Source of the DNA: Leucoraja erinacea | Lineage: Eukaryota | Direction: 5' to 3' | DNA: 64,000 nt | NCBI RefSeq assembly: GCF_028641065.1 | Contig: NC_073400.1 | Span: forward strand, 19,840,001-19,904,000 | Shown: one piece after another, positions 15,286 to 64,000 of the stretch | Position numbering within the stretch: position 1 is the stretch's first letter | Layout: each line of letters starts with the position of its first letter | Translations under genes and position numbers: made by a program | The notes under the pieces: model-generated | What the model saw: the letters and a program-made list of their open reading frames with translations, nothing else | Database searches by the model: none | What the model was told of the DNA's origin: nothing

Positions 15286-16148
15286 AAGAACCAGAACAAG
15301 GGGCCGCAGTCTTAGAATAAAGGAGAGGACATTTAAGACTGAGGTTGATCATATGCTGAACAATCCAACCACATCTTTGTTTGGAAGTGGAAAGAAATAA
15401 TAGAAATTGCATTCATTGCAATGTGTAAAACGAGTTGAGATACTGTATTATAATTTTGCTGCATGTCATCATGGCTTAATTTGTGAATATGTTTAGTTTG
15501 TGACTTTATTTGAAGCAGAAATAATATGTGAATGCTTCATTGAGCATAATTCCGACTGGTAACTACACACTTCGTTCGAGCACATTATCGCATGCGTCAT
15601 GCAAGCCGCCTTAAATGACCACCTAAACTGTCATTTGGCAACTTAAAAAGCTGCCAAGGTTGCCCGGCTGACACCAGAGAAAAAAATGAAGTGAGTGCCC
15701 TGCAAGGTGTATAATATTTTTGACACTGTCATAGGCCTTTCTTACACATGCTGTCACAACGCACCGTAGTCTCTAAACAACCCTTCAGTAATTTTCCTTG
15801 CCCTCCATTTCAGAATAATAGTGTTTTAAGCCAATAACTCGACACTAGCACTGGCAATAAATAAATAAATAAATAAGCGCCATTTTCCAGCCCCTTATCT
15901 CATTGGCCACGCTCGGCTGCAAATCGGTGTCAATCTGGTGGACCATCTTCCTCTCGTCGTGGAGGTGGGGGATTGGGAGGGGCCCCACAAGTGGAACAAC
16001 TTAGGGCCTCTCTTCATCTAAGGCATGGATTAGATATAGAGTGAAGTTCCCTCCACATTGTCCCATCACACACTCCCAATACACTGTCCCAATGAACAAA
16101 TAAACTACTGTCCTCCCAATAACCTGGGATCCTCACTTTGACACTCAC

Positions 16149-16430
16149 CAGATGTGGTCCGTTTACAGATATCCTTCAGCCGGATCTGTGCCGTGCCCTC
16201 ACTAACCGGGTTCGTGGTGTCACACCTGTACACAACGTCCCCGACCTCTGCTGTGTGATGAGCCTGTATTGTCTTTCCATGTCCCTCGAGGTGATGGGTG
16301 TTGTCGTTTCCCGAAGCTTCCTTCCACCACGTGAAGTTGATGGGGTCACCAGAGGTCACGTAGCAGGTCAGGGTGAAGTTGCAGATCTCAGTGATGTTCT
16401 CAGCCTTGATCTGTGTTCCTGCCACGGGCT
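16149..16430 (-). CDS. Gene A exon 3: CD2/SLAM-type C2-set Ig domain
   Basis: 282-nt phase 1-1 exon (acceptor ...ctcaacctcAG, donor G|GTGAGT). EPVAGTQI...CNFTLTC...FTWWK...YRCDTTNPVSE...IC carries the four-Cys and NPVS signature of CD2/SLAM membrane-proximal domains. Confidence 0.9.
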
Positions 16431-18084
16431 CTGAGGTTGAGCAGAGAGAAGAAAGATGAGTAAAGGAGATCCTTGTGGACCCCTCGATACCCAACAACCC
16501 GTCTCCAACAGCGATGAGTGAATGTTAGGCCGATCCCAGCTCATTTCCACCCACCAGTTTATCTATTCCCTCCCCCTTCAGTTCAGACAGTTGTTGCTGG
16601 AGGAAGTCCACACATGCTGCGCCCCCTTCCCGACCACTGCCCGCACTCATCCACAAACTCTCCACTGTGTCCTGTTTACAGCCAAGAGTCAAAAGTGCGA
16701 TATTATCATATGCCCCATATAGAACAATGAAATTCTTACATTCAGGAGCACAACAGAATATGTAAACATAGTAATCTGTAAATAATATAATAAACATGAA
16801 AAATTTGCATTTCGCATATGGTAATGGGTTGAGGTTCTTGTTGAGGTAGGAGTTGATATGCACCGTAACCAATCTCTCAAAGCACTTCATCGCCACGGAT
16901 GTTAGTGCCACAGATCGATAGTCATTGAGGCATATTGCCTTACTCTTTTGGAAGAGTATGTCGCCTTACTAGAATTTTTATTATTGATGCCCTCTTAAAG
17001 CAGGTGGGAACTTCAGACTTCAGTAATGAGAGGTTGAAGATGTCTGTAAAATCTCCAGTCTGCACAGGTTTCATGGCTCTGTATGTTGGGAATTCTCCTC
17101 AGTTCCATGTATTTTGTCACTCCTGTGAGTGAGTGGTCCCCATGTCTCTTTCACACCTGATGGACATTTTTAACGTATTGATCGGTATGGGCAGAGGGGA
17201 CTGAGAGAAACGACCCCCAGTGGGGGGAGGACAAGAAACAGAGACAGGAGGAGTGGGTTAGAGATTCAGGATAAGGGGCTGTCCTTGTCAGATGGAGAAA
17301 TTGAGAAATTCCTTCTCTCTGAGGGTTGGAAATCAGTGGAATTCTCCCTTGGAGAGCTGTGGAGGCCAAGTCGGTAAAAGTATTTAAGGCCAAGACAGAT
17401 AGAACTTTGTTCTGGAGGGAAGGCGGGAATGTGTACAATGGATTCAGATTCCGAATCTGATTCCGAACAAAGAGGGATCCGGCATGGGGGGGGTGGGTGA
17501 GTGTGGGGGCACCAAGAGCAACGAGGGACCATCAGGACTATATTGATAACGTTTGTAACTTTGTCTGCACCCTATATGTGGAGACTCTTTGCGTATGTGT
17601 GTATTATATGCAAAACAAAGAATTTCTCTGTACCAAGTGTATGTAACAAGAAATCATCAACCAATCAATCAATCGTCAGATTCAGATTAATATATTATCA
17701 TCTGGTCAAGGTGCAATGAAATTCCTTGCTTACATGACATGGAGTAAGCAGTGTGTGTAGTAACAATAAGAGAATAATAAATACGACTGGCACAATACAG
17801 TGGAATGGTGCAAGAGAAAGCCCCCAATAATACTGGAATAGCGCAAAAATATTGAAGTGCAATAGTAAGCAGGAAAGTGGAGCTGAGGCCAAGGTCAGAC
17901 CAGCGCTGATCTCAATGAGTGGGGAGCAGGCTTGAAGGGCCAAATAGCCTCTTCCTGCTCATGTTCCATGCTCTGATGTTCTCCTCCCAACCATGGGAAC
18001 TGGTTAACCCTGGGATGAAGGAGGGAAGATTTCCCAGCCAGACGCTACTGGGTGAGATTATTGTGAACGTTATACAGAGTCGGA

Positions 18085-19132
18085 GTCATAGAGTGATACA
18101 GTGTGGAAACAGGCCCTTCGGCCCAACTTGCTCACACCGGCCAACATGTCCCGGCTATACTAGTCCCACTTGCCTGCGCTTGGTCCATATCCCTCCAAAC
18201 CTGTCCTATCCATGTACCTGTCTAACTGTTTCTTAAACAATGGGATAGTCCCAGCCTCAACTACCTCCTCTGGCAGCTTGTTCCATACACCCACCACCCT
18301 TCGGGTTAAAATGTTACCCCTCAGATTATTTTCCCCTTCACCATGAACCTATGTCCTCTGGCCCTCGATTCCCCTACTCTGGGTAAGAGAATCTGTGCAT
18401 CTCCCCGATCTATTCCTCTCATGATTTTGTACACCTCTATAAGATCTCCCCTCATCCTCCTGTGCTCAATGGAATAGAGACCCAGCCTACTGAACCTCTC
18501 CCAACAGCTCACACCCTCTAGTTCTGGCAGCGTCATCGTAAATCTTTTCTGAACCCTTTCAAGCTTGACAATATCTTTCCTGTAACATGGTGCCCAGAAC
18601 TGAAAACAATATGTGGCCTCACCAACGTCTTATACAACTGCAACATGACCACCCAACTTCTATACTCAATACTCTGACTGATGAAGGCCAATGTGCCAAA
18701 TGTCTCTTTGACCACCTTAACTACCTGTGACTCGACCTTCAAAGAACCATTCACCTGCACTCCTAGATCCCTCTGCTTTACAACACTTCCCAGAGGCCTA
18801 CCATTTACTGGGTAGATCCTGCCCTTGTTCGATGTCCCAAAATGCAACACCTCACACTTGTCTGTATTAAATTCCATCTTCACCATCTGCAAAACCATTC
18901 ACTTTTGTATCAGCAAACTTGTAATCTTGCCCTGTATGTTCTCATTCAAATCATTGATGTAGATGACAAACTGTAACGGGTCCAGCACAGAACTGTGAGG
19001 CACACCACTAGTGACAGGCCTCCAGTCTGAGAAGCAACCTTCCACCATCACCCTCTGCTTCCTTCCATGGAGCCAATTTGCTATCCATTCAGCTATCTCT
19101 CCTTGGATCCCATGCGATCTAACCTTCCAGAA
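18085..19132 (-). mobile_element. CR1 LINE 3' fragment (frameshifted RT)
   Basis: WRPVTSGVP...FNTDKCEVLHFG...LYKTLVRPH...RGDLIEVYKIM. Confidence 0.9.
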
Positions 19133-19761
19133 CACATATTATTGTAAGAGTGAGATAGGAACAATATTGCTGGGTGTGAGTTTGCTGTTGTGTACGTGTA
19201 CTGCCTCACTCATTGGGACAGTATGTTCTGTGGAATAAATACACAGGACAACGCTCAGCAAAGCAGAGCATGGAGGCTGAGGAATAAGAACCTTGCTGAA
19301 CTCACTCCCCAGTCTTGGGAATGAACAGGCAGAGCTGTGGGAGACAGATGGAACAACTGGGATCCCTGAACATAACATACAAGGCTTTTGACCTGTGGAT
19401 ACAGTGGGGTCTGTTTAACTAGGTCTCAGAGATACAGACTGTTCGGCTCAACTAAACTACCCCTCCCACCCTATCAATTCCTCCCTCCCCATGTGCTCAG
19501 CTCCGCCAGCCTCTGAGCTAAGCGGTTCCCCGTTGACGGTTTGTTCCGTGGCGGCCCCTGGCCCAGCCTCTGGGGATGTGGTGGGTCTGTCCCCCAGCCT
19601 GGCACTGCCCCAGTCGCACTACGGCCGTGACCCCCCACTCCGCACAATGGCAGTCAGTGGGGTTCAGTAAACTGGGGAATGCACAGGATCTGCCCTCGCC
19701 CATTAATTAGACGGGTTGAGCAGCCAGTGAAACACGGGACCTCTGTGGCAGTCTCACTCAC

Positions 19762-20079
19762 CGTACACCTCCAGTTGGACTGTTGCCGGAGTTTCCTCTC
19801 CTGAACTTGTTCCAAAAGTCACCTCATATTCACCCGCGTCCTCTCCCCGTAGATCACGGATTTCCAAACTGAAGTTCCTGCGGTGAAGAGTTACCCGTCC
19901 CGTGTAATTGATGTTAAAGTAATTCATCTTCCCATTCGAGCATTCCGCTATCTTGAGTCTGGGCGATTTCCGCCTCCACGTAATTTCCGTAATGTCCGGT
20001 GTGACTGTGATCCCAGCAGGTAAGGAGACCGAGTGTCCCCGAGCTCCGGTCACGGTGTCAGCGGCGGCCCCAGTCCCAG
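19762..20079 (-). CDS. Gene A exon 2: V-set Ig domain lacking the canonical B-F disulfide (CD2/SLAM N-domain)
   Basis: 318-nt phase 1-1 exon (acceptor ...gtctcctcAG, donor G|GTGAGT). TVTGARGHSVSLP...ITW...YTGRVTL...NFSLEIRDLRGEDAGEYEV...VQLEVY joins in frame to the C2 exon (VY-E-PV). Confidence 0.9.
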
Positions 20080-21035
20080 CTGAGGAGACAAGAGAGGCAG
20101 TCAGTAGGACAGCTCCGTGACTGGAGGAGGAATCGGAGCTGGGAGAATCACAGAGCACATGAGTAGGCCATGCGGCCCATCGTCTGGCTCCCGGCTCCGT
20201 GAGATACCCAGCCCACAGTCCCTGCATCAGTGAGCCCACGGAGGGAACAGGGTGCAGATTCTGTTGGTGATTGTAAACGGGCTCCTGAAAGCACCCTTTA
20301 CCTTTTTTACACCATGGAAACAGACCCTTCGGCCCAACGAGTTAATGCCGTCCATTGATCATTCGTTCACACGAGTTCTATACAATCTCACTTGCCCATC
20401 CACTGCCTGAACATTAGGAGCAATATTACAGAGGCCAATGAACGTACAAATCTGCACACCTTCAGGATGTGGAAGGACAATGCGCTTCACTTTGAAACAG
20501 GAATGCATCATGGATGCCCCATGTCAGCCCGTTGCATTCCCTTTGCCCGCAGCCATTCTTGTGTCATCAGAGGGAAAGGTTGTCATATTTGGTTCTGTAT
20601 GGGCCAGGCATAGGTGTAATTCTGCCATGTAATGCTATTGATGCGTTCCTCCTGTTGACCTATGAAAGATGTGCTTGCCAGCAGGTATTCTGCTCCATGT
20701 ATTCCTCAATGCGCAAATGTGAGAAAACCTATGGGATCCAAGCAAGTCAGTGAGTGGTCAAGTATCTGGCAGAGAAAACATAAAGCAACACCCACCTCCT
20801 CTAGTAATTGGAAGGCTGCCAACAAACTGGCAGCAACTGGAGGTGACAGTTACCATTCAGCTATAATTTGGATGTAGGGATTGAAGACTTTGTGGCCAAG
20901 TTTGTGGATGTGAAAAATAGGTGGAGGGGCCGGTAATGTAGAGAAAGCTGGGACTCTGCAGAAGGATTAGGAAAGGTAGGGAGAGTGGGCAGAGAAGTGG
21001 AATAGTTTAATTAAGGTGTAGACTATTTTCTAAAT

Positions 21036-22700: not shown

Positions 22701-24486
22701 CATGGGCACCTCTGGAAGGCGTCAGCTGCAGCAGCACCTCTGGAGCTATATCTGAGGAAGGATGTTCTGGCTCTGGAGAGGGTCCAGAGGAGGTTTACAA
22801 GATTGATCCCAGGAATTAATAGGTTAACATATAATGATCGTTTGACGGCACTGGGCCTATACTCACTGGACTTTAGAAGAATGAGGGGGGACTTCATTGA
22901 GGGAAAGTCAGTGGATATATTTAAGGCAGAGATAGATAGAATCTTGATTAGTACGGGTGTCAGAGGTTATGGGGAGAATGGGGTTATGAGGTAGAGATGG
23001 ATCAGCCATGATCGAATGGCAGAGTAGACTTGATGGGCCAAATGGCCTAATTCTGCTCTTATCACTTGTCATTATTGTCAGGATTCCTCTGTGTGCTGGT
23101 CATAAATCAACTGGTGACCTCCATGTCTGGTATCATTGGTCACTATAGGAAGTGACCCCTTGTTCTGGAAGTCCAGAAGAAGGGGTCACATTTTAAGGAG
23201 AAGGGGGAAATCTTTTAGGACTGAGATGAGGAAAACATTTTTCACACAAAGAGTGGTGAATCTCTTGAATTCTCTGCCACAGAAGGTAGTTGAGGCCAGT
23301 TCATTGGCTATATTTAAGAGGGAGTTAGATGTGGCCCTTGTGGCTAAAGGGATCAGGGGGTATGGGAGAAGGCAGGTACAGGATACCGAGTTGGATGATC
23401 AGCCATGATCATATTGAATGGCGGTGCAGGCTCGAAGGGCCGAATGGCCTACTCCTGCACCTATTTTCTATGTTTCTATGTATAGTGCAACTCCCACCTT
23501 GCAGCTGACAACCAGAAGTGATGGATTTTTCTGAGGCAAGAGAAATGCGGTCAACTGTGACCCTGAACCCAGGCAGTAACTCACTGCCTTTGAAACCTCA
23601 CATTCAGATTAGTTTATGCCATATACACCAGGGGCAATGAAGTTTCAAGTTCGCATGAAGCTCACAGAGTAAACGATAAAGAGAATAACGACAAACCAAA
23701 TACAATAATGTTTGCAAATCCGCAGATTTGTGCAAAGGTTTTTGTGTAAACTGAAGACGTACGAAAAATACTAAAATGCAATAACAAAATAACCAATTGA
23801 GGTAGAATTAGGTACAAGAGTACATTACAGCAGCTCAGGGAAGGGGGTGTGAAAGACATTAAAGGTTCAGGAAATTGAGAGCCATGGGGAAGAAGTCGTA
23901 CTTAAGTCTGTAAAGATACCTCCATGTAGACGCCACATTAAAGGTCTGTCAGGATATGATAAGCAAACTCGAGTCATGCACTCTATCAAATGGTGGCAGG
24001 AAGTGGTAAGGTGATCAGAACTAATGAACAGAATTATGTGAAACATAAAATGGTGCTGAACTTCCGATACGTATACAGAGGGAGACCATGAGGGAGAGAG
24101 AGGAATAAAAGGAGGAAGAGAGAATGAGAGAGAGGGGGCAACAAAGGGAAAGACAGTCTGTCCTACAGAGATGATTGAGGTGTTGAGGAACCAACAAACA
24201 TGGTCAAAGTGGCGAACAAAGATATAGAACGTCTGTGGATTAAGTGAGAGATAGAAAGAGACAAAGTGAGATGCAATGAGATCAAGACTTAGAGAGGGAC
24301 AGAGGAAAAAGTGTGAAAGAATGGAAGAGACAAAGAGCAAGTAAGCAATTTACATGCAAAGGTGTGAACAAGCAAAGGGAGGATGTCACCATGATGAATG
24401 GCTCGTGCAAGCACTATAAACCTCACATCGCTCACACATATTTCACCGCTCTATAATCAGAATCAAACTCTAAAACTTGACATTAC

Positions 24487-24715: not shown

Positions 24716-27087
24716 ATAGAAACATAGAAACATAGAAATTAGGTGCAGGAGTAGGCCATTCGGCCCTTCGAGCCTGCACCGCCATTTAATATGATCATGG
24801 CTGATCATCCAACTCAGTATCTCGTACCTGCCTTCTCTCCATACCCTCTGATCCCCTTGGCCACAAGGGCCACATCTAACTCCTCTTAAATATAGCCAAT
24901 GAACTGGCCTCAACTACCCTCTGTGGCAGAGAGTTCCAGAGATTCACCACTCTCTGTGTGAAAAAAGTTCTCCTCATCTCGGTTTTTAAAGGATTTCCCC
25001 CATATCCTTAAGCTGTGACCCCTTGTCCTGGACTTCCCCAACATCGGGAACAATCTTCCTGCATCTAGCCTGTCCAACCCCTTAAGAATTTTGTAAGTTT
25101 CTATAAGATCCCCTCTCAATCTCCTAAATTCTAGAGAGTATAAACCAAGTCTATCCAGTCTTTCTTCATAAGACAGTCCTGACATCCCAGGAATCAGTCT
25201 GGTGAACCTTCTCTGCACTCCCTCTATGGCAATAATGTCCTTCCTCAGATTTGGAGACCAAAACTGCACGCAATACTCCAGGTGTGGTCTCACCAAGACC
25301 CTGTACAACTGCAGTAGAACCTCCCTGCTCCTATACTCAAATCCTCTTGCTATGAAAGCCAACATACCATTCGCTTTCTTTACTGCCTGCTGCACCCGCA
25401 TGCCTACCTTCAATGACTGGTGTACCATGACACCCAGGTCTCGCTGCATCTCCCCCTTTCCCAATCGGCCACCGTTTACATAATAATCTGCTTTCCCGTT
25501 TTTGCCACCAAAATGGATAACTTCACATTTATCCACATTAAACTGCATCTGCCAAACATTTGCCCACTCACCCAGCCTATCCAAGTCACCTTGCAGTCTC
25601 CTAGCATCCTCCTCACACCTAACACTGCCCCCCAGCTTAGTGTCATCCGCAAACTTGGAGATATTGCCTTCAATTCCCTCATCCAGATCATTAATATATA
25701 TTGTAAATAGCTGGGGTCCCAGTACTGAGCCTTGCGGTACCCCACTAGTCACTGCCTGCCATTGTGAAAAGGACCCGTTTACTCCTACTCTTTGCTTCCT
25801 GTTTGCCAGCCAGTTCTCTAACCACATCAATACTGAACCCCCAATGCCATGTGCTTTAAGTTTGTATACTAATCTCTTATGTGGGACCTTGTCGAAAGCC
25901 TTCTGGAAGTCCAGATACACCACATCCACTGGTTCTCCCCTATCCACGCTACTAGTTACATCCTCGAAAAATTCTATAAGATTCGTCAGACATGATTTAC
26001 CTTTTGTAAATCCATGCTGACTTTGTCCAATGATTTCACCACTTTCCAAATGTGCTGCTATCCCATCTTTAATAACTGACTCTAGCAGTTTCCCCACTAC
26101 CGATGTTAGGCTAACTGGTCTGTAATTCCCCGTTTTCACTCTCCCTCCCTTCTTAAAAAGTGGGGTTAAGTTTGCTACCCGCCAATCCTCTGGAACTACT
26201 CCAGAATCTAAAGAGTTTTGAAAGATTATTACTAATGCATCCACTATTTCTGGAGCTACTTCCTTAAGTACTCTGGGATGCAGCCTATCTGGCCCTGGGG
26301 ATTTATCGGCCTTTAATCCATTCAATTTACCCAACACCACTTCCCGACTAACCTGGATTCCACTCAATTCCTCCACCTCCTTTGACCCGCGGGCCCCTGC
26401 TATTTCCGGCAGATCATTTATGCCTTCCTTAGTGAAGACGGAACCAAAGTAGTTATTCAATTGGTCCGCCATATCCTGGTTCCCCATGATCAACTCACCT
26501 GTTTCTGACTGCAAGGGACCTACATTTGTTTTAACTAATCTCTTTCTTTTCACATATCTATAAAAACTTTTGCAGTCAGTTTTTATGTTCCCTGCCAGTT
26601 TTCTTTCATAATCCATTTTTCCTTTCCTAATTAAGCCCTTCGTCCTCCTCTGCTGGTCTCTGAATTTCTCCCAGTCCTCCAGTATGCTGCTTTTTCTGGC
26701 TAGTTTGTACGCATCATCCTTTGCTTTGATACTATCCCTGATTTCCCTTGTTATCCATGGATGCACTACCTTCCCTGATTTATTCTTTTGCCAAACTGGG
26801 ATGAACAATTTTTGTAGTTCATCCATGCAGTCTTTAAATGCCTTCCATTGCATATCCACCGTCAACCCTTTTAGAATTAATTGCCAGTCAATCTTGGCCA
26901 ATTCACGTCTCATACCCTCAAAGTTACCTTTCTTTAAGTTCAAAACCATTGTTTCTGAATTAACAATGTCACTCTCCATCCTAATGAAGAACTCAACCAT
27001 ATTATGGTCACTCTTGCCCAAGGGGTCACGCACAACAAGACTACTAACTAACCCTTCCACATTACTCAATACCCAGTCTAAAATAGC
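24716..27087 (-). mobile_element. Young 5'-truncated CR1 with a 731-aa open ORF2 (end of APE, RT, C-terminus)
   Basis: ORF 24910-27105 contains [37 protein letters not shown] and FADD; has an (ATAGAAAC)n tail. Confidence 0.95.
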
Positions 27088-28795
27088 AAGTAGGAATGAA
27101 CTCAAGTAGGTGATTAGAACTGACGCAAGTTGGGTTGAAGAAAATCATAATGCTTTTTATATGTATATTAAATCAACAAGGTAACCAGGAAGAAGTTAAG
27201 ACCACTCAAGAATACAGAAGGAAATGTGTTCTTGGCATCAGAGGATGTAGGTGAAGTACAAACTAAGTACTTTGCCTAAGAAAGAACTGCAGATGCTGGA
27301 TAAATCAGTAGACAAATATGCTGGAGAAACTCAGCGGGTCAGACAGCATCTATGGAGAGAAGGAATAAGCAACGTTTTGGGTCCAGACCCTTCTTCAGAC
27401 TGATGTCGGGGGGGGGCGGGGAAATGGAAAGGAAGAGGCGGAGACAGTAGTCTTGGGAGAGAGCTGGGAAGGGCGGGAAGGAGGGAGAAATCAAGGACTA
27501 CCTGAAATTGGAGGTCAATGTTCACACCACTGGCATGTAAACTACCCAAGCGAAATATGAGGTGCTGTTCCTCCAATTTGCGCTGGGCCTCACTCTGGCA
27601 ATGGCGGAGGCCCAGGACAGAAAGGTCAAATTCGGAACGGGAGGGGAAGTTGAAGTGCTGAGCCACCAGGAGATCAGGTTGATTATTGCAAATTGAGCGG
27701 AGGTGTTGGGCAAAGCAATCGCCAAGTCTGTGCATGGTCTCACCAATGTAGAGAAGTTGACACCTGGAGCAACGGATGCAGTTGATGAGGTTGGAGGAGG
27801 TTCAGGTGAACCTCTGCCTCATCTGGAAAGACTGCTTGGTCACTTGGATGGAGTTGAAGGGGGAGGTAAAGCGACAAGTGTAGTATTTCCTGCGTTTGCA
27901 AGGGAAAGTATCAGGGGAGGGGGTGGTTTAGGTGGGAAGGGACAAATTGACCAGGGAGTTACGGAGGGAATGGCCTCTGCAGAAAGCAGAAAAGGGAGGA
28001 GATGAAAAGATGTGGCCAGTGGTGGGATCCTGTTAGAGGTGGCGAAAATGTCGGAGGATTATATGTTGAATGCGACGGATGGTAGGGTGGAAGGTGAGGA
28101 CAAGGGGGACTTTGTCCTTGCTATGAGTAGGCAATGTGGAGTGAGAGCGGAGCTGTGGGATATAGAGGAGACCCTGGTGAGAGCCTCATCTATAGTCTGA
28201 GGAGAACCCCCGTTCCCTAAAGAATGAGGACATCTTCGATGCCCTGGTCTGGAACACCTCATTCTGGATGCAGATGCAGTGTAGATGGAGGAATTGGGAG
28301 TAGGGGATAGAGTTCTTACGGGAAGCAGGGTGGGAGGAACTATAGTCCAGAGAATCATGGGAGTCGATGGGTTTGTAGTAGAAACCCATTGACTTCCATG
28401 GCTGTCTGGACTACAAACACATTGAGTCCCATGGCTCTCTGGACGACACTTCTTCCCATCCTGCTCCCTGTAAGGACTCTATCCTCGACTCCCAATTTGA
28501 CTCCCAATTCCTCTGTCTATGCCGCATCTGCACCCAGAATGAGGTGATCCAGTCTAGGGAGATTATATGTTGTATATGCCGGCTGGTAGGGTAGAAGGTG
28601 AGGACAAGGGGGGTCTCTGTCCTTGTTATGAGTAGGGGAATGGGTAGTGAGAGCAGAGCTGTGGGATATAGAGGAGACCCTGGTGGGAGCCTCATCTATA
28701 ATAGCAGAGGGGAACACCTGTTCCCAAAAGAATGGGGACTTCTCCGATGCCCTGGTCTCATTCTGGGTGCAGATGCAGCCCCGGTTTCCTTCCCC

Positions 28796-50176: not shown

Positions 50177-50693
50177 TATAGAAACATAGAAAATAGATGC
50201 AGGAGTTGGCCATTCGGCCCTTTGAGCCTGCACCGCCATTCAATATGATCATGGCTGATCATCCAACTCAGTATTCTGTACCTGCCTTTTCTCCATACCC
50301 CCTGATCCCTTTAGCCACAAGGGCCACATCTAACTCCCTCTTAAATATAGCCAATGAACTGGACTCAACTACCTTCTGTGGCAGAGAATTCCAGAGATTC
50401 ACCACTCTCTGTGTAAAAAATGTTTTTCTCATCTCAGTCCTAAAAGATTTCCCCCTTATCCTTAAACTGTGACCCCTTGTTCTGGACTTCCCCAACATCG
50501 GGAACAATCTTCCTGCATCTAGCCTGTCCAACCCCTTAAGAATTTTGTACGTTTCTATAAGATCCCCCCTCAATCGTCTGAATTCTAGCGAGTACAAGCC
50601 GAGTCTATCCAGTCTTTCTTCATATGAAAGTCCTGACATCCCAGGAATCAGTCTGGTGAACCTTCTCTGCACTCACTCTATGGCAAGAATGTC
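50177..50693 (-). mobile_element. CR1 3' fragment
   Basis: [24 protein letters not shown]...GEKAGT; tail present. Confidence 0.9.
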
Positions 50694-54600: not shown

Positions 54601-55399
54601 GGTGGTGGGTGTTGGAGCTCATGACATTGTCACAAGGCCAGGGGGAGATATGAAATTACATAGTGGGAAGAAAGGCCTCGTTCTGTATCTTTATAAATAA
54701 ATCAATGTCAACACTAATTAATAATTGAGTTTGAAGATGGGTTTCAACTTTTAGTTGAGTTTAATTTAGAGATACAGCGCTGAATTCACTGTATCTCTAA
54801 CTCGGATCTCTGGGGCTATAGGCAGAAAATACCACTGCGCCACCACGCCGACTTGAAATGTCAAGAATCTGTAAAAGGGTATCCACCCGAAACGTCGCCT
54901 ATCCATGTTCTCCACAAATGCTGCCTGACTAGTTGAGTTACTTCAGCACTTTGTGTCATTGTCTGCAGTTCTTTGTTTCTGCCTCTTAATTCTAGATAGT
55001 CGTAGACCATGCAAACAAGCCCTTTGGCCCAACTCTTCCATGCTGGCCAAGTGCTCATCTAAGCTAGTCCCATTTTCCAGCATTTGATCCATATCCCATA
55101 TTCCTCCTAATCTTTTCTAACCATGTTTTTCAAAATGTTATTATGCCTGCCTCAACCATTTCCTCTGGCAGTTGCCCCTCAGGTTCCAGATAACCTACAA
55201 ACCCGTACCTCTCTGGGATCTAGGATAATACCTGAGCACTCCTGGGTTTTCCTCTGTAGCCCTTCTTGATGAAAGCACAACATTTTGTTTAGTTTAATTT
55301 AGAGATACAATATGGAAACAGGCCCTTCGGCCCATTTAGTACACGCCGACCATCGATCAATAGTTCGCGTTAGTTCTATGTTATCCCACTTTCTCATCC

Positions 55400-56430
55400 A
55401 CTCTTCTTATCAACATTCTTCTTTTGCTTTCCCTGTCTCTCGTTATCTGCAAGTTTCTATTCCCCTCTTTCTTTGTCTGTTTGCTTTTGTTTCCTGTCTT
55501 CCTCTTTCCATCACCACACTCACTGTCTCCTCCTCATCCTCTAGCCCACTTCATCTTAATACACCTTCACCCTCTCTATCCCGTTTTACTCATTACTTTC
55601 TCTCTCTCTCTCTGTCCCACTTTCCTCAATCAATTTGCCCCTTTTCCTTTCTTGCCCCCTCTCTCTGCTCCCCTCTCCTTTCCCTCATTCCCTTACTGCT
55701 GCTCCATGCACCTTTCTCCCTCCCATCACCCTCGCTCTGACCTTTTGTCTTTACTTTCCCTTCTTTCTCACCCTCCCCCCAAGTCTGTCTTTCTCTCACT
55801 CTATCTGCCTGTTTTCCAATCTTTCTCTCCCCCACTGCTTTTTTATCTATTTGCCTCTTTTTTGGCTTCCCTTCTTTCTCTCCCAACCCCCTCTATGTCC
55901 CTCTTTCCATCAATCCCAGTGTGGCTCTGTCTCCCCCATTTCCCCTTACTCTCTCCCTCTATCTCTGACCATCTCCTTCTTTCCTGTCTCTCTCCCCGCC
56001 CTTACTCCCGCCTCTCCCCCCTCTCTCCGCATTTTCTGACACCTCTACTCTTTTTCTTTGGCACATCTCTCACTCCCCCTTGCTCTCTGCCCCTCCCCTA
56101 TGGCCCTACACATTTTCTCTTCCTCTCCCTTCTCCTTCTCTGTGCCCCACATTTACCTACCTCTCCCTCACCCTCTCTTTCCCCCCCACTGCAATATCAC
56201 TCCTCCACCCTCTTTATCTGCCCCGTTCCTTTCTTTCTCTGACCCCTTTCCTTTTCTCTCCCTTCCCGTTCTCCTTTACTCTCCCACCCTCTGTGACCCA
56301 TTTCCTCCCTGCCCCATCTCCTTCTCTATGCTCACTTCCCCGTTCTCTCCCCACCTCTCTGCCCTTTCTCTCCCTCTCTTTGTCCCCTCTTCTCACAGTC
56401 TCTCTCTCTGTCTACACCCCCTCCCTCTCT
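55400..56430. repeat. ~1 kb polypyrimidine (CT-rich) low-complexity tract upstream of gene B
   Basis: Strongly C/T-biased on +. Confidence 0.9.
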
Positions 56431-56459
56431 ACAGCCAGATCTGGGCTGATCTGGGCTGG

Positions 56460-56644
56460 TCCCTGTGGCTTTTATTTTGATTCTGCTCTCACGTGCGTCA
56501 GGAAGTGCTGAGTCTTGTGGTCACTTGACCATTCTGAGCCTCTCCCTCTCTATCTGCAGCCAGTCTGTGACCTTGTCTCACTGGGATCACACGGAATATT
56601 TGCCACCTCTGCCACTCAGACCCCTTTGCAACAGCTGTCAAACA
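56460..56644 (+). promoter_or_regulatory. Putative leukocyte-type promoter of gene B
   Basis: Overlapping CACGTG (56490), TGCGTCA (56494), CAGGAAGTG ETS (56499) and TGTGGTC RUNX (56516), ~125-155 bp before the ATG. Confidence 0.5.
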
Positions 56645-56702
56645 ATGGATACCCTGCTCAAGGCTGTACTGGGAGTCATCATCTTTTGCTCCATGTGGAC
56701 TG
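56645..56702 (+). CDS. Gene B exon 1: signal peptide MDTLLKAVLGVIIFCSMWT
   Basis: ACAATGG Kozak context, 58 nt (19 codons + 1), donor G|GTGAGT; joins GSAG of the next exon to complete a cleavage site. Confidence 0.8.
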
Positions 56703-58024
56703 GTGAGTTGGGGTGGGGACATGGAAGGCAGAGGAAGCGCGGAGTGAGAGAGGGTGGGAAAAGTGAGCGTGTGGGCAAGAGGGGCGAGCGGCAGAGACAG
56801 GGAGCGAGGACAATCAGCAGGATGAGACAGGGAGTAGTGAGAGAGTGATAGCAAGAGGGAGTGGGAAAGAACACTGAGGAATGAATAATAGACTGAGGGG
56901 CTGTTGCTCCTGAGGATGGTTCAGAGGGGCGGAGTGATGGGGAGGGAGAACCAAACGGAGGATCTGCTGTTGCTCTTGAATTCTCAGTTCCCCTCTATTG
57001 CCCATTGTCTCGGCATCCCCCGAGACACAGAGGGTAAACGATATACACTGTGACCAGTGCTGTGGGTCAACCTCTTCCCCAGCACAGTCCAGGCAAAGGT
57101 CCTTTCCCCCTTTTCAGCCACAACATTCTCCCAAGGGCTCTCACTGCATCTCAACCGGCTTTCTCACCCTATACCGCTGCCACTGCTGCTTCAGACTTAT
57201 AAGTCATTTCTATACTAACTGGTTGAGGAAGTGAGGATGCGGTGTGGGGGGGGGGGTGGTTAGCACCTGGTGAGGTGATATTGTAGTGGGTCAAGGGGTG
57301 GTCAGCACAAGAGGGCTGTGAGGGACCGTATCTCTCCCCTTTCTTAGAGTCTCCATTGTACAGAATAAGCTTTAAATGGGTGTATCGCAGGAAAAGTGAA
57401 CTGTGAGGAGGACCTCTGACACCCACAGGTTATGAGAGAGAGAGCGAGAGAGAGAGAGAGAGAGAGAGGAGTCAGCAAAAGCAGGGTGAGGAGTAGGGAG
57501 AGAGGGAGAATGTGGGAGGAGAGAAAGTGACAAGTCTGAGAAAAAGGAAATCAAGAGAGCGGGTGAAGTCAGCTGGCAGGACACAGAAAGAAGGGTGGTG
57601 GCAGTCAGTGGGATGGGGGGGCAGTAAAGAAGGGACGATGGGTGGGGGGAATGGTGATCTACCTCAATGCTATTGTCCGGCACTAACCCCACATCTTGTG
57701 ATTCCATCAATATCCAAAAATGTCAACTTTATCCAACTTTACACAAATTCTCCCATACATCTTATAGAGCATTTGTCAAGCTGGTGAGCTGGTGATAATA
57801 GTGACAATGTATTTCATGGTATTTATTAATGACTGCATTCAGTAAACATTCCATTTGCAGAATTACGGGTAATGTTGGTGTGTTTATTTGATGAAATGCA
57901 AGAATTTTAGCATGTGTATAGGGCAAAATGTAGATTTCTGCAGAAAAGTTTAGTTTTTGACGCATAGATACCGGCTGCTGGACTGTTCTCAGGAACGAAA
58001 CTCTGGCGTAACCCAGGGACTGCT

Positions 58025-58340
58025 GTATTAAAAAAAATCATAAAATGTATTCAATTACTTAAAATTAATATTTACACTACAATAAAACAACCTAGAACCC
58101 ACCACCATACCACAATACAAACATATATCCTTAATAAACTACTATACAACTATGATACAATCCTTATTGAGGATACATTCAACACTCTGCGGAGCCCAGT
58201 GGTCCCGGAACTCCCTCAGGGTGCCCGTGGACAGCGCGTATTCCCTTTCTAACTGCACCCAGACACGGACCTATCCCCGGAAATGGGGCAGGCAGCTAGT
58301 TCGATTAGAGCCCTCCACCGCCTGGCGCCATGACTCGCGG
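58025..58340 (-). mobile_element. Tx1/L1-like 3' end fragment
   Basis: The minus strand reads ...FRG.VRV.VQLEREYALSTGTLREFRDHWAPQSVECIL..., followed by an AT-rich 3'UTR. Confidence 0.55.
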
Positions 58341-58920
58341 AGGACTGCTGGTTTTGGTGAGGTTGTGAAAGATGTTCACACCAGCACTACTGTGCAGTTT
58401 TGTTCATCTAATTGAAGAAGATACACCAGCATTGTGGGCAGTCCCAAAGATATTCACTCTGACAATTCACAGGATGAAAGGACAATCCTATCGCAAATAA
58501 CTAAAGCAATTAGATCAATATTGTTTGGGGTTTAGAAGAATGAGGGGTGACCTTACTGATCCTACAAGATCCTGCTGGAGTTCAACAAGGTAGATGATAA
58601 GATGTAATAACCAGTGGAAGATTGTTGAATAGGGTAGAGAGTTACGTGGCAATTTAAAACAGAATATTTTGCAGAAGTGATGAATCTCTAGAATGTTTTT
58701 ACCCGAGAAGGCTCTGGAGGCCAGATCATTGGGGATTATAAAGAGGAAGTCTGTAAGTTTTTGTGAGGTTAGAGAGCTATGGGGAACTGGCACAGAACAG
58801 GAGTTGAGGCCTGCGACAGATCACCAGGATCATAATGAATGGTGGCAGGCTTGTGGGCCGAGTGGCCGCCTCCTGCTTCTATCTGTTTGTGTTCATTCTT
58901 AGTTTCTTCCTTTTTGGTTA

Positions 58921-59225
58921 CAGCGCCCTCCATAATGTTTGGGACAAAGACCCATCATTTATTCATTTGCCTCTGTACTCCACAATTTGAGATTTGTAAT
59001 AGAAAAAAAATCACACTGGTTAAAGTGCATATTGTAAGATTTTCATAAAGGCAATTTTTACACATTTTGGTTTCACCATGTAGAAATTACAGCCGTGTTT
59101 ATACATAGTTCCCCATTTCAGGGCACCATAATGTTTGGGACACAACAATGTCATGTAAATGAAAGTAGTCATGTTTAGTATGTTGCTGCATATCCTTTAC
59201 ATGCAATGACTGCTTGAATTCTGGA
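58921..59225 (+). mobile_element. Tc1/mariner IR-DR terminal fragment
   Basis: TA|CAGCGCCCTCCATAATGTTTGGGACA with an inner direct repeat CCATAATGTTTGGGACA at ~59126. Confidence 0.65.
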
Positions 59226-59483
59226 CATCATCAGTCCATGAATGTTCCCATCTACTGAATTTCCCACAGCCCACGGATACTCCATCTCTGCCCGCTGAAA
59301 CCACTCACACAGTGCAGACACTCTCTCCCATCACAGACTCTCTCCGCCCATTGAATCTCTGTGGGCCCATCGACATTTGCCTCCATCACCGAATCTCCCC
59401 ACACACCGAATCCCCTCTCCCACAGAAACTCTTCCCCCGTCGCCGACCCTCCCCACCAACTGAATCCCCCCCCTCACAGCATA

Positions 59484-60553
59484 CATAGAAACATAGAAAA
59501 TAGGTGCAGGAGTAGGCCATTCGGCCCTTCGAGCCTGCACCGCCATTCAATATGATCATGGCTGATCATCCAACTCAGTATCCCGTACCTGCCTTCTCTC
59601 CATACCCCCTGATCCCTTTAGCCACAAGGGCACATCTAACTCCTTCTTAAATATAGCCAATGAACTGGCCTCAACTACCTTCTGTGGCAGAGAGTTTCAG
59701 AGATTCACCACTCTCTGTGTGAAAAATGTTTTTCTCATCTCGGTCCTAAAGGATTTCCCCCTTATCCTTAAGCTGTGACCGCTTGTCCTGGACTTCCTCA
59801 ACATCGGGAACAATCTTCCTGCATCTAGCCTGTCCAACCCCTTAAGAATTTTGTAAGTTTCTACAAGATCCCCTCTCAATCTCCTAAATTCTAATGAGAA
59901 CAAGCCGAGTCTATCCAGTCTTTCTTCATATGAAAGTCCTGACATCCCAGTAATCAGTCTGGTGAACCTTCTCTGCACTCCCTCTATGGCAATAATGTCC
60001 TTCCTCAGATTTGGACACCAAAACTGTACGCAATACTCCAGGTGTGGTCTCACCAAGACCCTGTACAACTGCAATAGAACCTCCCTGCTCCTATACTCAA
60101 ATCATTTTGCTATGAATGCTAACATACCATTCACTTTCTTCACTGCCTGCTGCACCTGCATGCCTACTTTCAATGACTGGTGTACCATGACACCCAGGTC
60201 TCGTTGCATCTCCCCTTTTCATAATCGGCCACCATTTAGATAATAGTCTGCTTTCCTGTTTTTGCCACCAAAGTGGATAACCTCACATTTATCCACATTA
60301 TACTGCATCTGCCATGCATTTGCCCACTCACCCAGCCTATCCGTCACCTTTCAGCCTCCTAGCATCCTCCTCACAGCTAACACTGCCCCCCAGCTTAGTG
60401 TCATCTGCAAACTTGGAGATGTTGCATTTAATTCCCTCGTCCAAATCATTAATATATATTGTAAATAGTTGGGGTCCCAGCACTGAGCCTTGCGGTACCC
60501 CACTAGTCACTACCTGCCATTCTGAAAAGGACTTGTTTACTCCTACTCTTTGC
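59484..60553 (-). mobile_element. CR1 3' fragment in intron 1 of gene B
   Basis: RT C-terminal motifs; highly similar to 267-1201 and 24716-25800. Confidence 0.95.
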
Positions 60554-60806
60554 AGGAGTAGGATGCTCCCACTGCGTGTAGGTGCAGACGCACGCTGAAC
60601 TGTCCCATGCTGTATGCGGGGAATATTTACAGGAAGTTTCCTGCCTTTTGAGCAGATGGGTGTTCTGCCCTTTAAACTGATCGTGCACTTGCTGTCCCCG
60701 TGATGCAACACGGCCTGGTTCAGTCAGGTCGTGTGGCCCTGTGTTGATGACCCCGTGTGCAGCGCCGATATCAGACTGGGCTCTAACCTCACTCTCTCCT
60801 CCCCAG

Positions 60807-61088
60807 GTTCCGCGGGAAAGATTGCCTACACGGTTGAGAAACTCTCCCCCACGGGCAGTCCCTGTCAGTTGGAGTTGAGATGCGCTATCCAGGGACAAGC
60901 AACAAAATTCCACTGGTACCGAGGTAGCACCAAAATATCTGACGACAGCAGGCACCGTGTGGAATTCGGAGGCGAGCAGCTGACCGTCACACCTGACTCC
61001 AACACCAACAGCGCCGTGTACAAATGCCTTTCGGAGGCAACCCAGGAGGACCTATCCGTTGACGTGGCCCCAGCCTGTAACTTCATTG
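60807..61088 (+). CDS. Gene B exon 2: CD2/SLAM-like four-Cys C2 Ig domain
   Basis: 282-nt phase 1-1 exon (acceptor ...ctcctccccAG; donor G|GCGAGT, GC-type). CQLELRC...FHWYRG...LTV...VYKC...AC. Confidence 0.8.
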
Positions 61089-62561
61089 GCGAGTTTATGC
61101 AAAAAACTGGTTGGACTTTTTGTTATGTCTCCCCCCCTGCACCCCAGTAATTTCTCTCCTGTCCCGCCACCAATCTCACACAGTCGTCGAAGTGGAAAGG
61201 GACACACGTGCATATGCATTGAACCACTCACTCAATCACACGGTCATCCACTAGATAGTCGTGTACATATCTGCAGGAATCTTACCCAACTAGTCTTGCT
61301 CCCAGTGAAACTTACACACTCATGTATTTACACAAACACAATCTCAAACATGTCACAAGTTCACCATTACCGACGTACACTTGCACACATGCACCTACCT
61401 ACCTCCCATAATGAGTTGCAGATAGGGACATGAGAATTATGCACTTACACATAGTCTCACACAAACGCAGACCTGTGCAGAGAAAATCACACACCATTGG
61501 CACAAACCGTCTCACGGTTAAACATAAGTGGCCACACATACCTGTAACACTGCACAATAAAGCTATCTGCAAAGTTGGATGCCCAGCCTCTCACATACAG
61601 ACACATGGTCTGTCATACATAGACATGCATACATATACATAGTTTCTGTCTCTCTCCCCCACACACAGGCATAGAAATCAGATACACATCCACACGCACA
61701 CACAGATCCAAAGAAGTAATCAAATCAAAAAGGTACACCGCCTCACACACACAAATCAATACAATCTCATGAACACACACACATGCACACACACACACAT
61801 ACATGCACAGTTATCTGCACAATCATAGAATTGCATACACAATCACAGACACACAGATGAACAATCAAAGACACAGCCAACTGCACTAAAAATCACATTC
61901 TCACCATCACACACAGATACTACCATCAGAATCTCTCTCTGACACACAAAGTGAAATGTATGCACTTAGTTATACATAACGTTAAATACACATTTAGACA
62001 GGTACATGGACAGGGTAGATTTGGAGGGATATAAGCCAAAAGCGGGCAGGTGGAAATAGTTTAGTTGAGGAAAGTTGAGCCGAAGGGCCTGTTTCCGCGT
62101 TGTGTGACTATAAGACTAATTGCATTCATACATAGTTAAGCACACACAGACCATTACACATCTCACACATCTAGTCGCAGATATACATATGAACAGCCAG
62201 AATACACAATCACGGGCACAAACACACCTTGAGTGTTTCAGACATGCAATAGACAGGTGTGAACAGTTAAAGAACAGGATCATAAGTTCATGTTAGAGTA
62301 GCAGAATTAGGCCATTTGGCCCATCAGGTCTACACCATTCATTCATGGCTGATCTTGCATACACACCATACAGCGTGACACACAAATGGTCAAACACACA
62401 TGGATGGTCACGTCTTCAAAACCAGACAGGACGCTATTTCTGTCTCACATGTAAATTAACACGGATTGTCATAGGTAATGACAATAATGCACATGATGCA
62501 CAGCGATCCTCTACTCTGTGCACGGAACGCCGGTGAGTATCCCGTTTCTTTCTGTTCACAG

Positions 62562-62674
62562 GCTCTTCGTGCATGTGCTCCCGAGTTAGGATGGCCATGA
62601 CAATCACCTTCCTGTGCCTGTGGTTCAGTGCCTTGGGATTCACCGCCTACTTCTGCTGTGGACAGACCAGTTAA
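62562..62674 (+). CDS. Gene B exon 3: stalk (CxC), transmembrane helix and short tail
   Basis: Acceptor tttctttctgttcacAG, phase 1. GSSCMCSRVRMAMTITFLCLWFSALGFTAYFCCGQTS-stop is in frame with exon 2. Confidence 0.7.
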
Positions 62675-63004
62675 GTGGGGGACTTCTTGGGTTAGGGCAG
62701 CATGGAGAGGGCAGGGACTGGATGATAAACCAGAGGTAACGGACACAAGAAACTGTAGATGCTGGAACCATGAGCACAACGCAAGTGCTGGAGGAACTCA
62801 AAAGACTAATCATCAGTGTGATGAAGGCTCCCGACCCCAAACGCCTGTTGATTCCCTCCCTGAATGGCAAAGTTCCTCCTACACTTTGATTATACTCCAA
62901 ATGCCCGAAGCAGCTGAGAATTCTGAAGGGCCTGTCCCACTTGGGCGTCAATTGCGCGTCATTTATGTGACAGGCCGGTGGTGACTGTCGCACGAAAATC
63001 ACCT

Positions 63005-64000
63005 CTGGCCTAAATGGCCTACCCCATATTCCTTGACTGTGGCTCCTGTTTCTGGACTCCCCCAGCACTGGGAACATGTTTCCTGCCTCTAGCGTGTCCA
63101 ATCCCTTAATAATCTTATATGTTATATGGTGTACAATTTTGGTCGCCCAATTATAGGAAGGATGTCAACAAAATAGAGAGAGTACCGAGGAGATTTACTA
63201 GAATGGTGCCTGGGTTTCAACAACTAAGTTACAGAGATAGGTTGAATAAGTTAGGTCTTTATTTTCTGGAGCGCAGAAGGTTAAGGTGGGACTTGATGAT
63301 GAGAGGGATAGACAGGGTTGATGTGGACAAGCTTTTCCCTTTGAGAAAAGGGAAGATTCAAACAAGAGGACATGACTTCAGAATTAAGGGACAGAAGTTT
63401 AGGGGTAACATGAGGGGGAACTTCTTTATTCAGAGAGTGGTAGCGGTGTGGAATGAGCTTCCAGTGGAAGTGGTGGAGGCAGGTTCGTTGGTATCATTTA
63501 AAAATAAATTGGATAGGCATATGGATGAGAAGGGAATGGAGGGTTATGGTATGAGTGCTGGCAGGTGGGACTAAGGGGAAAAAAAAGTTGTTCGGCACGG
63601 ACTTGTAGGGCCGAGATGGCCTGTTTCCATGCTGTAATTGTTATATGGTTATATGGTTTCAATAAGATTCCCTCTCATTCTTCTAAATTCCAGTGTCTAC
63701 AAGCCAAGTCGCTCCATTCTATCAGCAAATGACAGTCCCGCCAGCCCGGGAATTAACCTTGTGAACCTACACTGCACTCCCACAATAGCAAGAATGGTCT
63801 TCCACAAATTTGGAGACCAAAACTGCACACAATACTCCAGATGTGGTCTCACTAGAGCCCTGCACAACTGCAGAAGGACCCCTTTGCTCCTATACTCAAC
63901 TCCTCCTGTTATGACAGCCAATATATCGTTAGTTTACTTCACTGCCTGTTGGACCTGCATGCTTACCTTCAGTGACTGATGAACAAGGACCCCCAGATCT
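63005..64000. mobile_element. Minus-strand CR1 with a nested plus-strand CR1 (63120-63656)
   Basis: The host sequence ...AATCTTATATG|TTTCAATAAG is split by a (TTATATGG)-tailed CR1 3' fragment. Confidence 0.85.

Follow-up and report, generated by a model that had tools for sequence, protein, structure and literature searches.

Three exons of the little skate Leucoraja erinacea, encoding a leader, one C2 Ig domain of the SLAM type, and a stalk with transmembrane (TM) segment, likely form the front part of a longer, expressed gene whose cytoplasmic exons follow past the end of the window, i.e., the 64,000-nucleotide stretch of DNA analyzed here, and which represents, in the skate, an elasmobranch family predicted at NCBI as 'uncharacterized protein' only. 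Apparently, the family comprises unstudied, V-less, SLAM-derived receptors occurring only in elasmobranchs, and its members probably signal, as judged from their sequences, via an ITAM of their own. A literature search for a V-less C2/ITAM family yielded nothing. SLAM/CD2 receptors are defined by a binding V domain and tails with ITSMs. A conserved and expressed C2-only branch with an ITAM would show that cartilaginous fishes rewired the old SLAM/CD2 family into a directly activating form; for comparative immunology, this makes the family an unstudied candidate activating receptor. A preliminary description had proposed an undescribed chondrichthyan activating receptor that has almost no tail and depends on an adaptor. 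The uncharacterized and probably activating nature was retained, while the tail-less, adaptor-dependent form was abandoned, because the RNA splices past the supposed stop and shark and ray relatives have a long tail with its own activation motif.

Exon structure and splicing of the skate gene

All three exons of the preliminary description (exon 1 at 56645–56702, an Ig exon from 60807, and a TM exon from 62562) were found with the translations given there. Each of them matched the Mobula birostris protein P0005, with identities of 52% for the leader, 52% for the C2 domain, and 46% for the TM segment. Tblastn of P0005 on the window gave matches at 56645–56713, 60806–61111, and 62561–62671. This exon-by-exon match exceeds chance by far. 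Homology and fold searches were run on the exons one at a time.

The coding part of exon 1 (56645..56702, plus strand) comprises the signal peptide MDTLLKAVLGVIIFCSMWT and ends after base 1 of a Gly codon, at the phase-1 donor G|GTGAGT. Intron 1 (56703..60806, plus strand) is rich in transposon fragments and contains no V-set exon. Its open frames of 72–128 aa gave no Ig match with Pfam, tblastn with the V exon of the neighboring gene returned transposon noise only, and a six-frame Ig pattern scan revealed no hidden V exon. Contigs of X1 and X5 carry 93 and 56 letters, respectively, 5′ of 60806 that are absent from 58001–60805. In the orthologue models, the same start Met is used and the leader leads directly into the C2 domain, which begins at about residue 22. 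Together, these contig letters and the orthologues lend indirect support to the junction 56702/60807. Both the intron without V exon and these orthologues support a V-less protein with a leader built for direct joining to a single C2 domain; the N-terminal V-set domain expected of the CD2/SLAM family is absent here.

Exon 2 (60807..61109, plus strand, phase 1 to phase 1) encodes one C2/I-set Ig domain containing four Cys residues (C19, C25, C73, and C90) and the start of the stalk, EFMQKT. Its main donor is CTG|GTTGGA at 61109/61110. Spliced contigs from two studies (X1 record 6, 2016; X3 record 19, 2023, at a depth of 385) join 61109|62562 with GT..AG borders. Originally, the junction 61088/62562 with a GC donor had been assumed, instead of which the RNA contigs of X1 and X3 use 61109|62562; compared to 61088, the donor at 61109 adds seven residues, EFMQKTG. 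The GC donor TTG|GCGAGT (61089..61094, plus strand) is probably a minor in-frame alternative to the main donor, from which it is located 21 nt in the 5′ direction. No spliced 61088|62562 contig was present among the matches listed. X3 record 20 consists of 62535, then one letter, then 61089–61770, and this letter order is as expected of a lariat with its 5′ end at 61089. From this record, the A at 62536 (plus strand; ccggtgAgta), located 25 nt 5′ of the acceptor, is a candidate branch point of intron 2.

Exon 3 (62562..62669, plus strand, phase 1 to phase 1) encodes the stalk SSCMCS, a flanking RVR, the TM segment MAMTITFLCLWFSALGFTAYFCC, and GQT, and it ends after base 1 of a Ser codon. It can be aligned without gaps to Hypanus CSRGLLAMKIALLCLWLGILGYTFYYCNRKTS. 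Directly downstream, the weak donor CCA|GTTAAG with an in-frame TAA was found (62670..62674, plus strand). Because both spliced contigs (X1 record 6 and X3 record 19) leave the genome at 62671, the donor A|GT at 62669/62670 is in use, which places the TAA at 62672 within an intron in these RNAs. Past 62671, 17 letters in X1 record 6 and 40 letters in X3 record 19 were unmatched when compared with the genome up to 64000. In Mustelus, isoform X2 (P0158) lacks 12 residues directly after LCHQQS, at the same place as the skate CCGQT|S border. Tblastn with four orthologues detected no tail exons within the window; the remaining skate exons are located beyond base 64000. A 150-aa protein with the tail CCGQTS as main product, as assumed before, is thus not compatible with the two spliced contigs, which run on past exon 3, and the idea of almost no tail is contradicted by further cytoplasmic exons indicated by the transcripts and present in the orthologues. 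As a caution, a weak donor just 5′ of an in-frame stop, near the end of a window, can make a long-tailed receptor seem tail-less. A GPI anchor was also considered, as the end of the initial model (small residues, spacer, hydrophobic stretch, and four residues) resembled a GPI signal, for which CD48 is an example; it was dropped in view of the onward splice and the orthologue tails.

The C2 domain and its SLAM-like relatives

With Pfam, exon 2 matched I-set (24.2 bits, E 3.5e-5), and the residues C19, C25, C73, and C90 were invariant in an alignment of 12 family sequences. The best per-domain sequence match of the C2 domain was a shark Ly-9-like/SLAMF5-like protein with 48.5 bits and all four Cys residues aligned. 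For the AlphaFold model of the domain (pLDDT 83), the closest fold in a wide search with VIA-align was the C2 domain of NTB-A/SLAMF6 (2if7_A, residues 107–193; Z 9.4, rmsd 2.1 Å, 79 aligned residues, 24% identity); the next-ranked structure scored one Z unit lower. Foldseek against PDB gave nothing at E 0.001 or better and generic Ig matches only, a profile search against PDB sequences gave weak generic I-set matches only (myomesin, VEGFR2, and CEACAM1), and a word search with exon 2 among proteins of 51–163 aa gave no match.

An adjoining SLAM-like V+C2 gene was found in the window as well, on the minus strand. Its V exon matched the Pfam models V-set (1.3e-10) and Receptor_2B4 (3e-4), and its C2 exon encodes four Cys residues, which supports a location of the skate gene in a SLAM-like cluster. 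The assignment of the C2 domain to the CD2/SLAM type is therefore substantiated by the four invariant Cys residues forming two disulfides, the fold match to NTB-A, and the adjoining SLAM-like gene.

SLAM receptors bind via their V domain, which in the CD2/SLAM proteins is an N-terminal V-set domain without canonical disulfide, and the ITSM in their tails binds SAP/EAT-2. With family members such as SLAMF6/NTB-A, Ly-9, and CD84, the skate gene shares the phase 1 exons and a C2 domain next to the membrane that contains two disulfides (C-x5-C ... YxC ... C). In contrast to these, the skate gene and its family have no V domain, and the orthologue tails carry ITAM-like motifs and no ITSM.

The elasmobranch family and its cytoplasmic tails

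The family set comprised 16 sequences from eight elasmobranch species, including NCBI 'uncharacterized protein' models from Mobula, Hypanus, Narcine, Heterodontus, Scyliorhinus, and Mustelus. Members are Scyliorhinus canicula LOC119971552, Hypanus sabinus LOC132395789, Mobula birostris XP_072106776, and several Mustelus asterias loci. Shark as well as ray species carry members of the family, which has multiplied in Mustelus. Its members are type I membrane proteins with two disulfides in the C2 domain, a short stalk often containing one Cys, and a TM segment flanked by a basic residue outside and Cys inside. Complete models consist of leader, one C2 domain, TM segment, and a tail of 110–200 aa, in which a membrane-proximal EEGIYS[DH][LV] and one or two ITAM-like motifs Yxx[LI]-x7-8-Yxx[LI] are present. 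Such a motif was found in 11 of the 16 members; those without include Heterodontus, where the second Tyr is lost, and three Mustelus models that end early. The Pfam model ITAM (PF02189) matched P0005 with 25.4 bits (cut-off 22.2), while an ITSM (TxYxxV/I) was present in none of the 16 sequences.

The skate exons are homologous to this family in leader, C2 domain, and TM segment, in the same order and with the exon border after the TM segment in the same place. Unlike the family, the skate protein has Thr instead of the Lys at the TM border, an Arg four residues earlier, and a second Cys in the stalk (CxC). The skate R-V-R stands ahead of the best 21-residue hydrophobic window; in the shark members, Lys is the residue just before this hydrophobic window, while the Lys of Mobula and Hypanus occupies its 5th or 6th position. 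The orthologue Lys is part of VKI[TI]L, four residues further in than the skate Arg. The previous interpretation of the TM Arg as an FcR-gamma-pairing signature was not supported, as the best hydrophobic window does not include this residue and the orthologues do not share it (Lys in the orthologues, where the skate has Thr). The CxC stalk was not conserved either; one of its Cys residues is common to the rays and Heterodontus, and none is present in catsharks and Mustelus.

The previously assumed coupling to an ITAM adaptor was not supported, since the orthologue tails have ITAM-like motifs of their own, so that FcR-gamma coupling is unnecessary to explain signaling. For the skate copy, an ITAM is predicted from the orthologues only. 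Most likely, the receptor would signal by itself: clustering of the ectodomains may lead to phosphorylation of the ITAM tyrosines by a Src kinase, and the phosphorylated ITAM could then recruit a kinase of the Syk/ZAP-70 type. The stalk Cys might link two chains by a disulfide, and the Cys beside the membrane might be palmitoylated.

Comparison with activating receptors and alternative explanations

FcalphaRI (CD89), NKp46, and similar receptors have short tails without motifs and an Arg inside the membrane. The skate protein resembles them in its basic residue near the outer TM end in an R-M-A context; it differs in that its RNA continues to further exons and its Arg is located at the membrane border and not conserved, and the orthologue tails are long and contain an ITAM. 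The combination of one Ig domain with a stalk Cys, one TM segment, and an ITAM in the tail is also found in CD79a/b, the CD3 chains, CEACAM3/CEACAM20, and the herpesvirus K1 glycoprotein, although by sequence only the Ig fold is shared with these, and an acidic TM residue is absent here. As leads only, the protein atlas listed the CEACAM20, K1, and allergin-1 clusters as look-alikes of P0005. Membership in the allergin-1 group, suggested by the protein atlas, was rejected, as the Pfam model Ig_C17orf99 was not matched.

CD79 and CD3 chains supply ITAMs to antigen receptors. It is conceivable, but unlikely, that the skate protein is not a ligand-binding receptor but a signaling subunit, which has no V domain for binding and as a lateral partner would lend its ITAM to V-bearing, tail-poor SLAM-like chains of the cluster. 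One Ig domain, the stalk Cys, the conserved Lys/Arg at the TM border, and the ITAM form a set like that of CD79/CD3, and weak Pfam hints pointed to the CD3-delta Ig_4 model (E 0.07–0.09). Similarly doubtful is the extended form of this idea, an elasmobranch invention in which a V-stripped SLAM C2 domain with ITAM tail would serve as a CD79/CD3-like shared subunit of such chains, with the TM-border Lys/Arg and the stalk Cys as contacts. The SLAM-like relatives examined (P0013, P0020, and P0037) have no acidic TM residue for pairing, however, and the Lys/Arg is placed at the membrane border. Moreover, public runs differed from the window at seven positions in exon 2, all of which change the amino acid, and this fits better to a ligand-exposed surface than to a buried subunit.

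The self-signaling, long-tailed receptor was also weighed against two explanations of even lower probability. Without splicing at 62669, a protein of 150–157 aa ending in CCGQTS would result, which would have no signaling tail and rely on the juxtamembrane Arg for coupling to FcR-gamma or DAP12. The weak donor CCA|GTTAAG with the in-frame TAA directly after it might permit read-through as a minor form, and throughout the family a basic residue is retained at the outer border of the TM segment. Nevertheless, this is very unlikely in view of the departure of both spliced contigs from the genome, the long tails in all complete orthologue models, the position of the Arg, and a cytoplasmic side that offers no basic residue for stop transfer. 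Very unlikely, too, is a decaying or non-functional gene copy with transcripts as noise. For it speak the transposon-rich surroundings, the two weak donors, and the fact that no skate protein of the family was found among the annotated proteins searched. Against it, the frames of the three exons are open, every invariant residue of the family is kept, and splicing was correct in two independent studies, with a depth of 235–385 in X3.

Exons and splicing of the skate gene

The three coding stretches on the plus strand translate as initially described: exon 1 (56645-56701) encodes MDTLLKAVLGVIIFCSMWT, with a good donor of phase 1 (G|GTGAGT) after it, the exon 2 frame (60809-61087) encodes a 93-residue domain with four Cys, and the exon 3 frame (62564-62674) encodes SSCMCSRVRMAMTITFLCLWFSALGFTAYFCCGQTS followed by a stop. 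Exon 2 was recognized as an Ig domain by Pfam (I-set, 24.2 bits at a cut-off of 23.7; E 3.5e-5). Immediately upstream of exon 1, a 1.2 kb C/T-rich low-complexity tract (55300-56500) is open in several frames, the Ser/Leu/Pro strings reaching 292 codons, and probably represents a non-coding, pyrimidine microsatellite-like region.

Exon 2 was detected in five public RNA runs by run search, and RNA contigs from four of them were aligned to 58001-64000. Two contigs were spliced, namely record 6 of run X1 (524 letters, study of 2016) and record 19 of run X3 (316 letters, depth 385, study of 2023), and both carry the joint 61109|62562 with GT..AG borders. The main exon 2 thus comprises 60807-61109 and ends 21 nt beyond the donor of the preliminary description, so that 61088/62562 is not the main joint. 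With the donor at 61109 the stalk reads NFIGEFMQKTGSSCMCS, equal in length to the stalks of Mobula and Hypanus. The donor previously chosen after 61088 is GC, not GT (TTG|GCGAGT), and may be used as an in-frame minor splice site, as suggested by one contig (X3 record 20) in which 62307-62535 is followed by one letter and then by 61089-61770. This order would be expected if reverse transcription had crossed a lariat with its 5′ end at 61089, which would place the branch A of intron 2 at 62536, 25 nt 5′ of the acceptor. The X3 depth was about 28 over the whole of intron 2 versus 235-385 for the exons; the X2 contig was unspliced and genome-like.

At the end of exon 3, the match to the genome stops at 62671 in both spliced contigs, and the following 17 (X1) and 40 (X3) letters have no place in 58001-64000. 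Since the sole GT at this exon end is the weak phase-1 donor at 62670-62671 (CCA|GTTAAG), the TAA at 62672 is intronic, and the proposed stop (62672-62674) with its six-residue tail arose artefactually, because a weak donor close to the end of the window had been read through. If the next exon started with GT, this would explain the two extra aligned letters and keep the split codon as Ser (compare NKKTS / NRKTS of rays). Isoform X2 of a Mustelus relative (P0158) is without 12 residues directly after LCHQQS, which places a Mustelus exon border at the same position. Towards the 5′ side, 93 letters of X1 record 6 and 56 letters of X5 record 28 preceding 60806 have no place in 58001-60805, which fits exon 1 but is not proof of it.

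The window also holds a LINE reverse-transcriptase frame of 744 open codons (24913-27144, minus strand) and related fragments at 23189-23398, 50197-50469, 59566-59775, and 63113-63571. In every run, contig depth was very high over the LINE copies in intron 1 (59400-60600) and 3′ of exon 3 (63000-64000), so that any read-through signal downstream of 62672 is masked.

A V-less family with a SLAM-type C2 domain

Database and fold searches were performed with the exons one by one. With exon 2 alone, a word search gave no match among proteins of 51-163 aa, while a full HMMER search matched many multi-Ig proteins. In four proteins one stretch spans the whole domain directly after a leader: P0005 of Mobula birostris (275 aa, 53% identity, domain residues 22-112), P0029 of Narcine bancroftii (model without TM segment), and P0022 of Heterodontus francisci and P0036 of Scyliorhinus canicula (models without leader), all four named 'uncharacterized protein' at NCBI. 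A profile search further found Hypanus sabinus, Scyliorhinus torazame, and seven Mustelus asterias loci; no skate protein of the family was found in either search. Complete models share a leader, a single C2 domain, a short stalk, a TM segment beginning VKI[TI]L (MKIAL in Hypanus) with a Cys at its inner border, and a tail of about 110-200 residues. By tblastn, the leader, C2, and TM exons of skate were matched by P0005 in this order at 52%, 52%, and 46% identity, with no tail match within the window, and the skate sequence CSRVRMAMTITFLCLWFSALGFTAYFCCGQTS, stalk plus TM, aligns gap-free to CSRGLLAMKIALLCLWLGILGYTFYYCNRKTS of Hypanus. Within searches of limited reach the family looks restricted to elasmobranchs, and a literature search found no description of it.

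The claim that the receptor is V-less was borne out. None of the open frames of intron 1 bears an Ig signature (Ig pattern scan, Pfam), the intron has no match to the V exon of the SLAM-like neighbour gene, and a V domain is absent from every complete orthologue model, hence its loss is older than the shark-ray split.

Assignment of the domain to the CD2/SLAM-like C2 type also held. Ten positions are invariant in 12 sequences, among them those of the four Cys, the Trp, and YxC. A Ly-9-like/SLAMF5-like protein of Heptranchias matched exon 2 with 48.5 bits per domain over all four Cys, the top repeat of a generic multi-Ig protein with 36 bits. In a fold comparison, the AlphaFold model of the domain (pLDDT 83) came nearest to the NTB-A/SLAMF6 C2 domain, which led the next row by one Z unit (Z 9.4; 79 residues at rmsd 2.1 A and 24% identity). 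A SLAM-like gene lies in the same window on the minus strand (16108-20341), with a V exon inside 19757-20071 (Pfam V-set 1.3e-10, Receptor_2B4 3e-4) and a four-Cys C2 exon inside 16108-16434. Its V domain very closely resembles that of P0037, a protein of Rhinoraja longicauda named 'HEPACAM family member 2-like'.

Signalling parts and alternative readings

On the best explanation, the gene is the representative in skate of a V-less receptor family of SLAM origin with its own ITAM, through which the skate receptor would signal; exons, splicing, homology, and fold are shown, while the tail in skate and all steps of signalling are predicted. The Pfam ITAM model scored above cut-off in P0005 (25.4 versus 22.2 bits), and 11 of the 16 family sequences contain Yxx[LI]-x6-8-Yxx[LI], with two copies each in Mobula and Hypanus; the second ITAM Tyr is lost in Heterodontus, and none of the 16 contains an ITSM. 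The preliminary description instead proposed a short-tailed chain, coupled to FcR-gamma by a TM Arg and dimerized by two stalk Cys (CxC). For such a mechanism the product would have to be tail-less and the Arg to lie within the membrane, neither of which is supported: the RNA splices past the supposed stop, and the skate Arg residues stand four and six residues before the family Lys position, outside the best hydrophobic window, with Thr at that position itself. All members other than skate have Lys as basic TM residue, directly before the best hydrophobic window in sharks and as its 5th or 6th residue in Mobula and Hypanus. Regarding the CxC, conservation holds for the second Cys, common to rays and Heterodontus; the first is not shared, and catsharks and Mustelus have neither. 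A short-tailed, Arg-coupled, CxC-linked chain is therefore possible only as a minor product of read-through. For the same short end, a GPI anchor was also considered and dropped, because it likewise presupposes a tail-less product. That the receptor acts as a subunit lending its ITAM to V-bearing neighbours is improbable, and nothing found here supports it.

A single shark, Mustelus asterias, has at least seven paralogues (P0156-P0162). Some carry an ITAM, and the models of three (P0160-P0162, 258-280 aa) stop short of the ITAM region. The set could consist of paired long-tail and short-tail forms, or some of the gene models could be incomplete.

Sequence differences in exon 2

No differences between public runs and window were found in exon 3. 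In exon 2, each of the four public runs departs from the window sequence at 4-7 sites (60848, 60851, 60891, 60894, 60900, 60921, and 60975), and all seven differences alter the amino acid (P14A, T15S, Q28L, G29A, A31G, R38Q, and E56A), a number that alone is not significant. The changes could stem from polymorphism at a ligand face or from a second copy that is very close in sequence.
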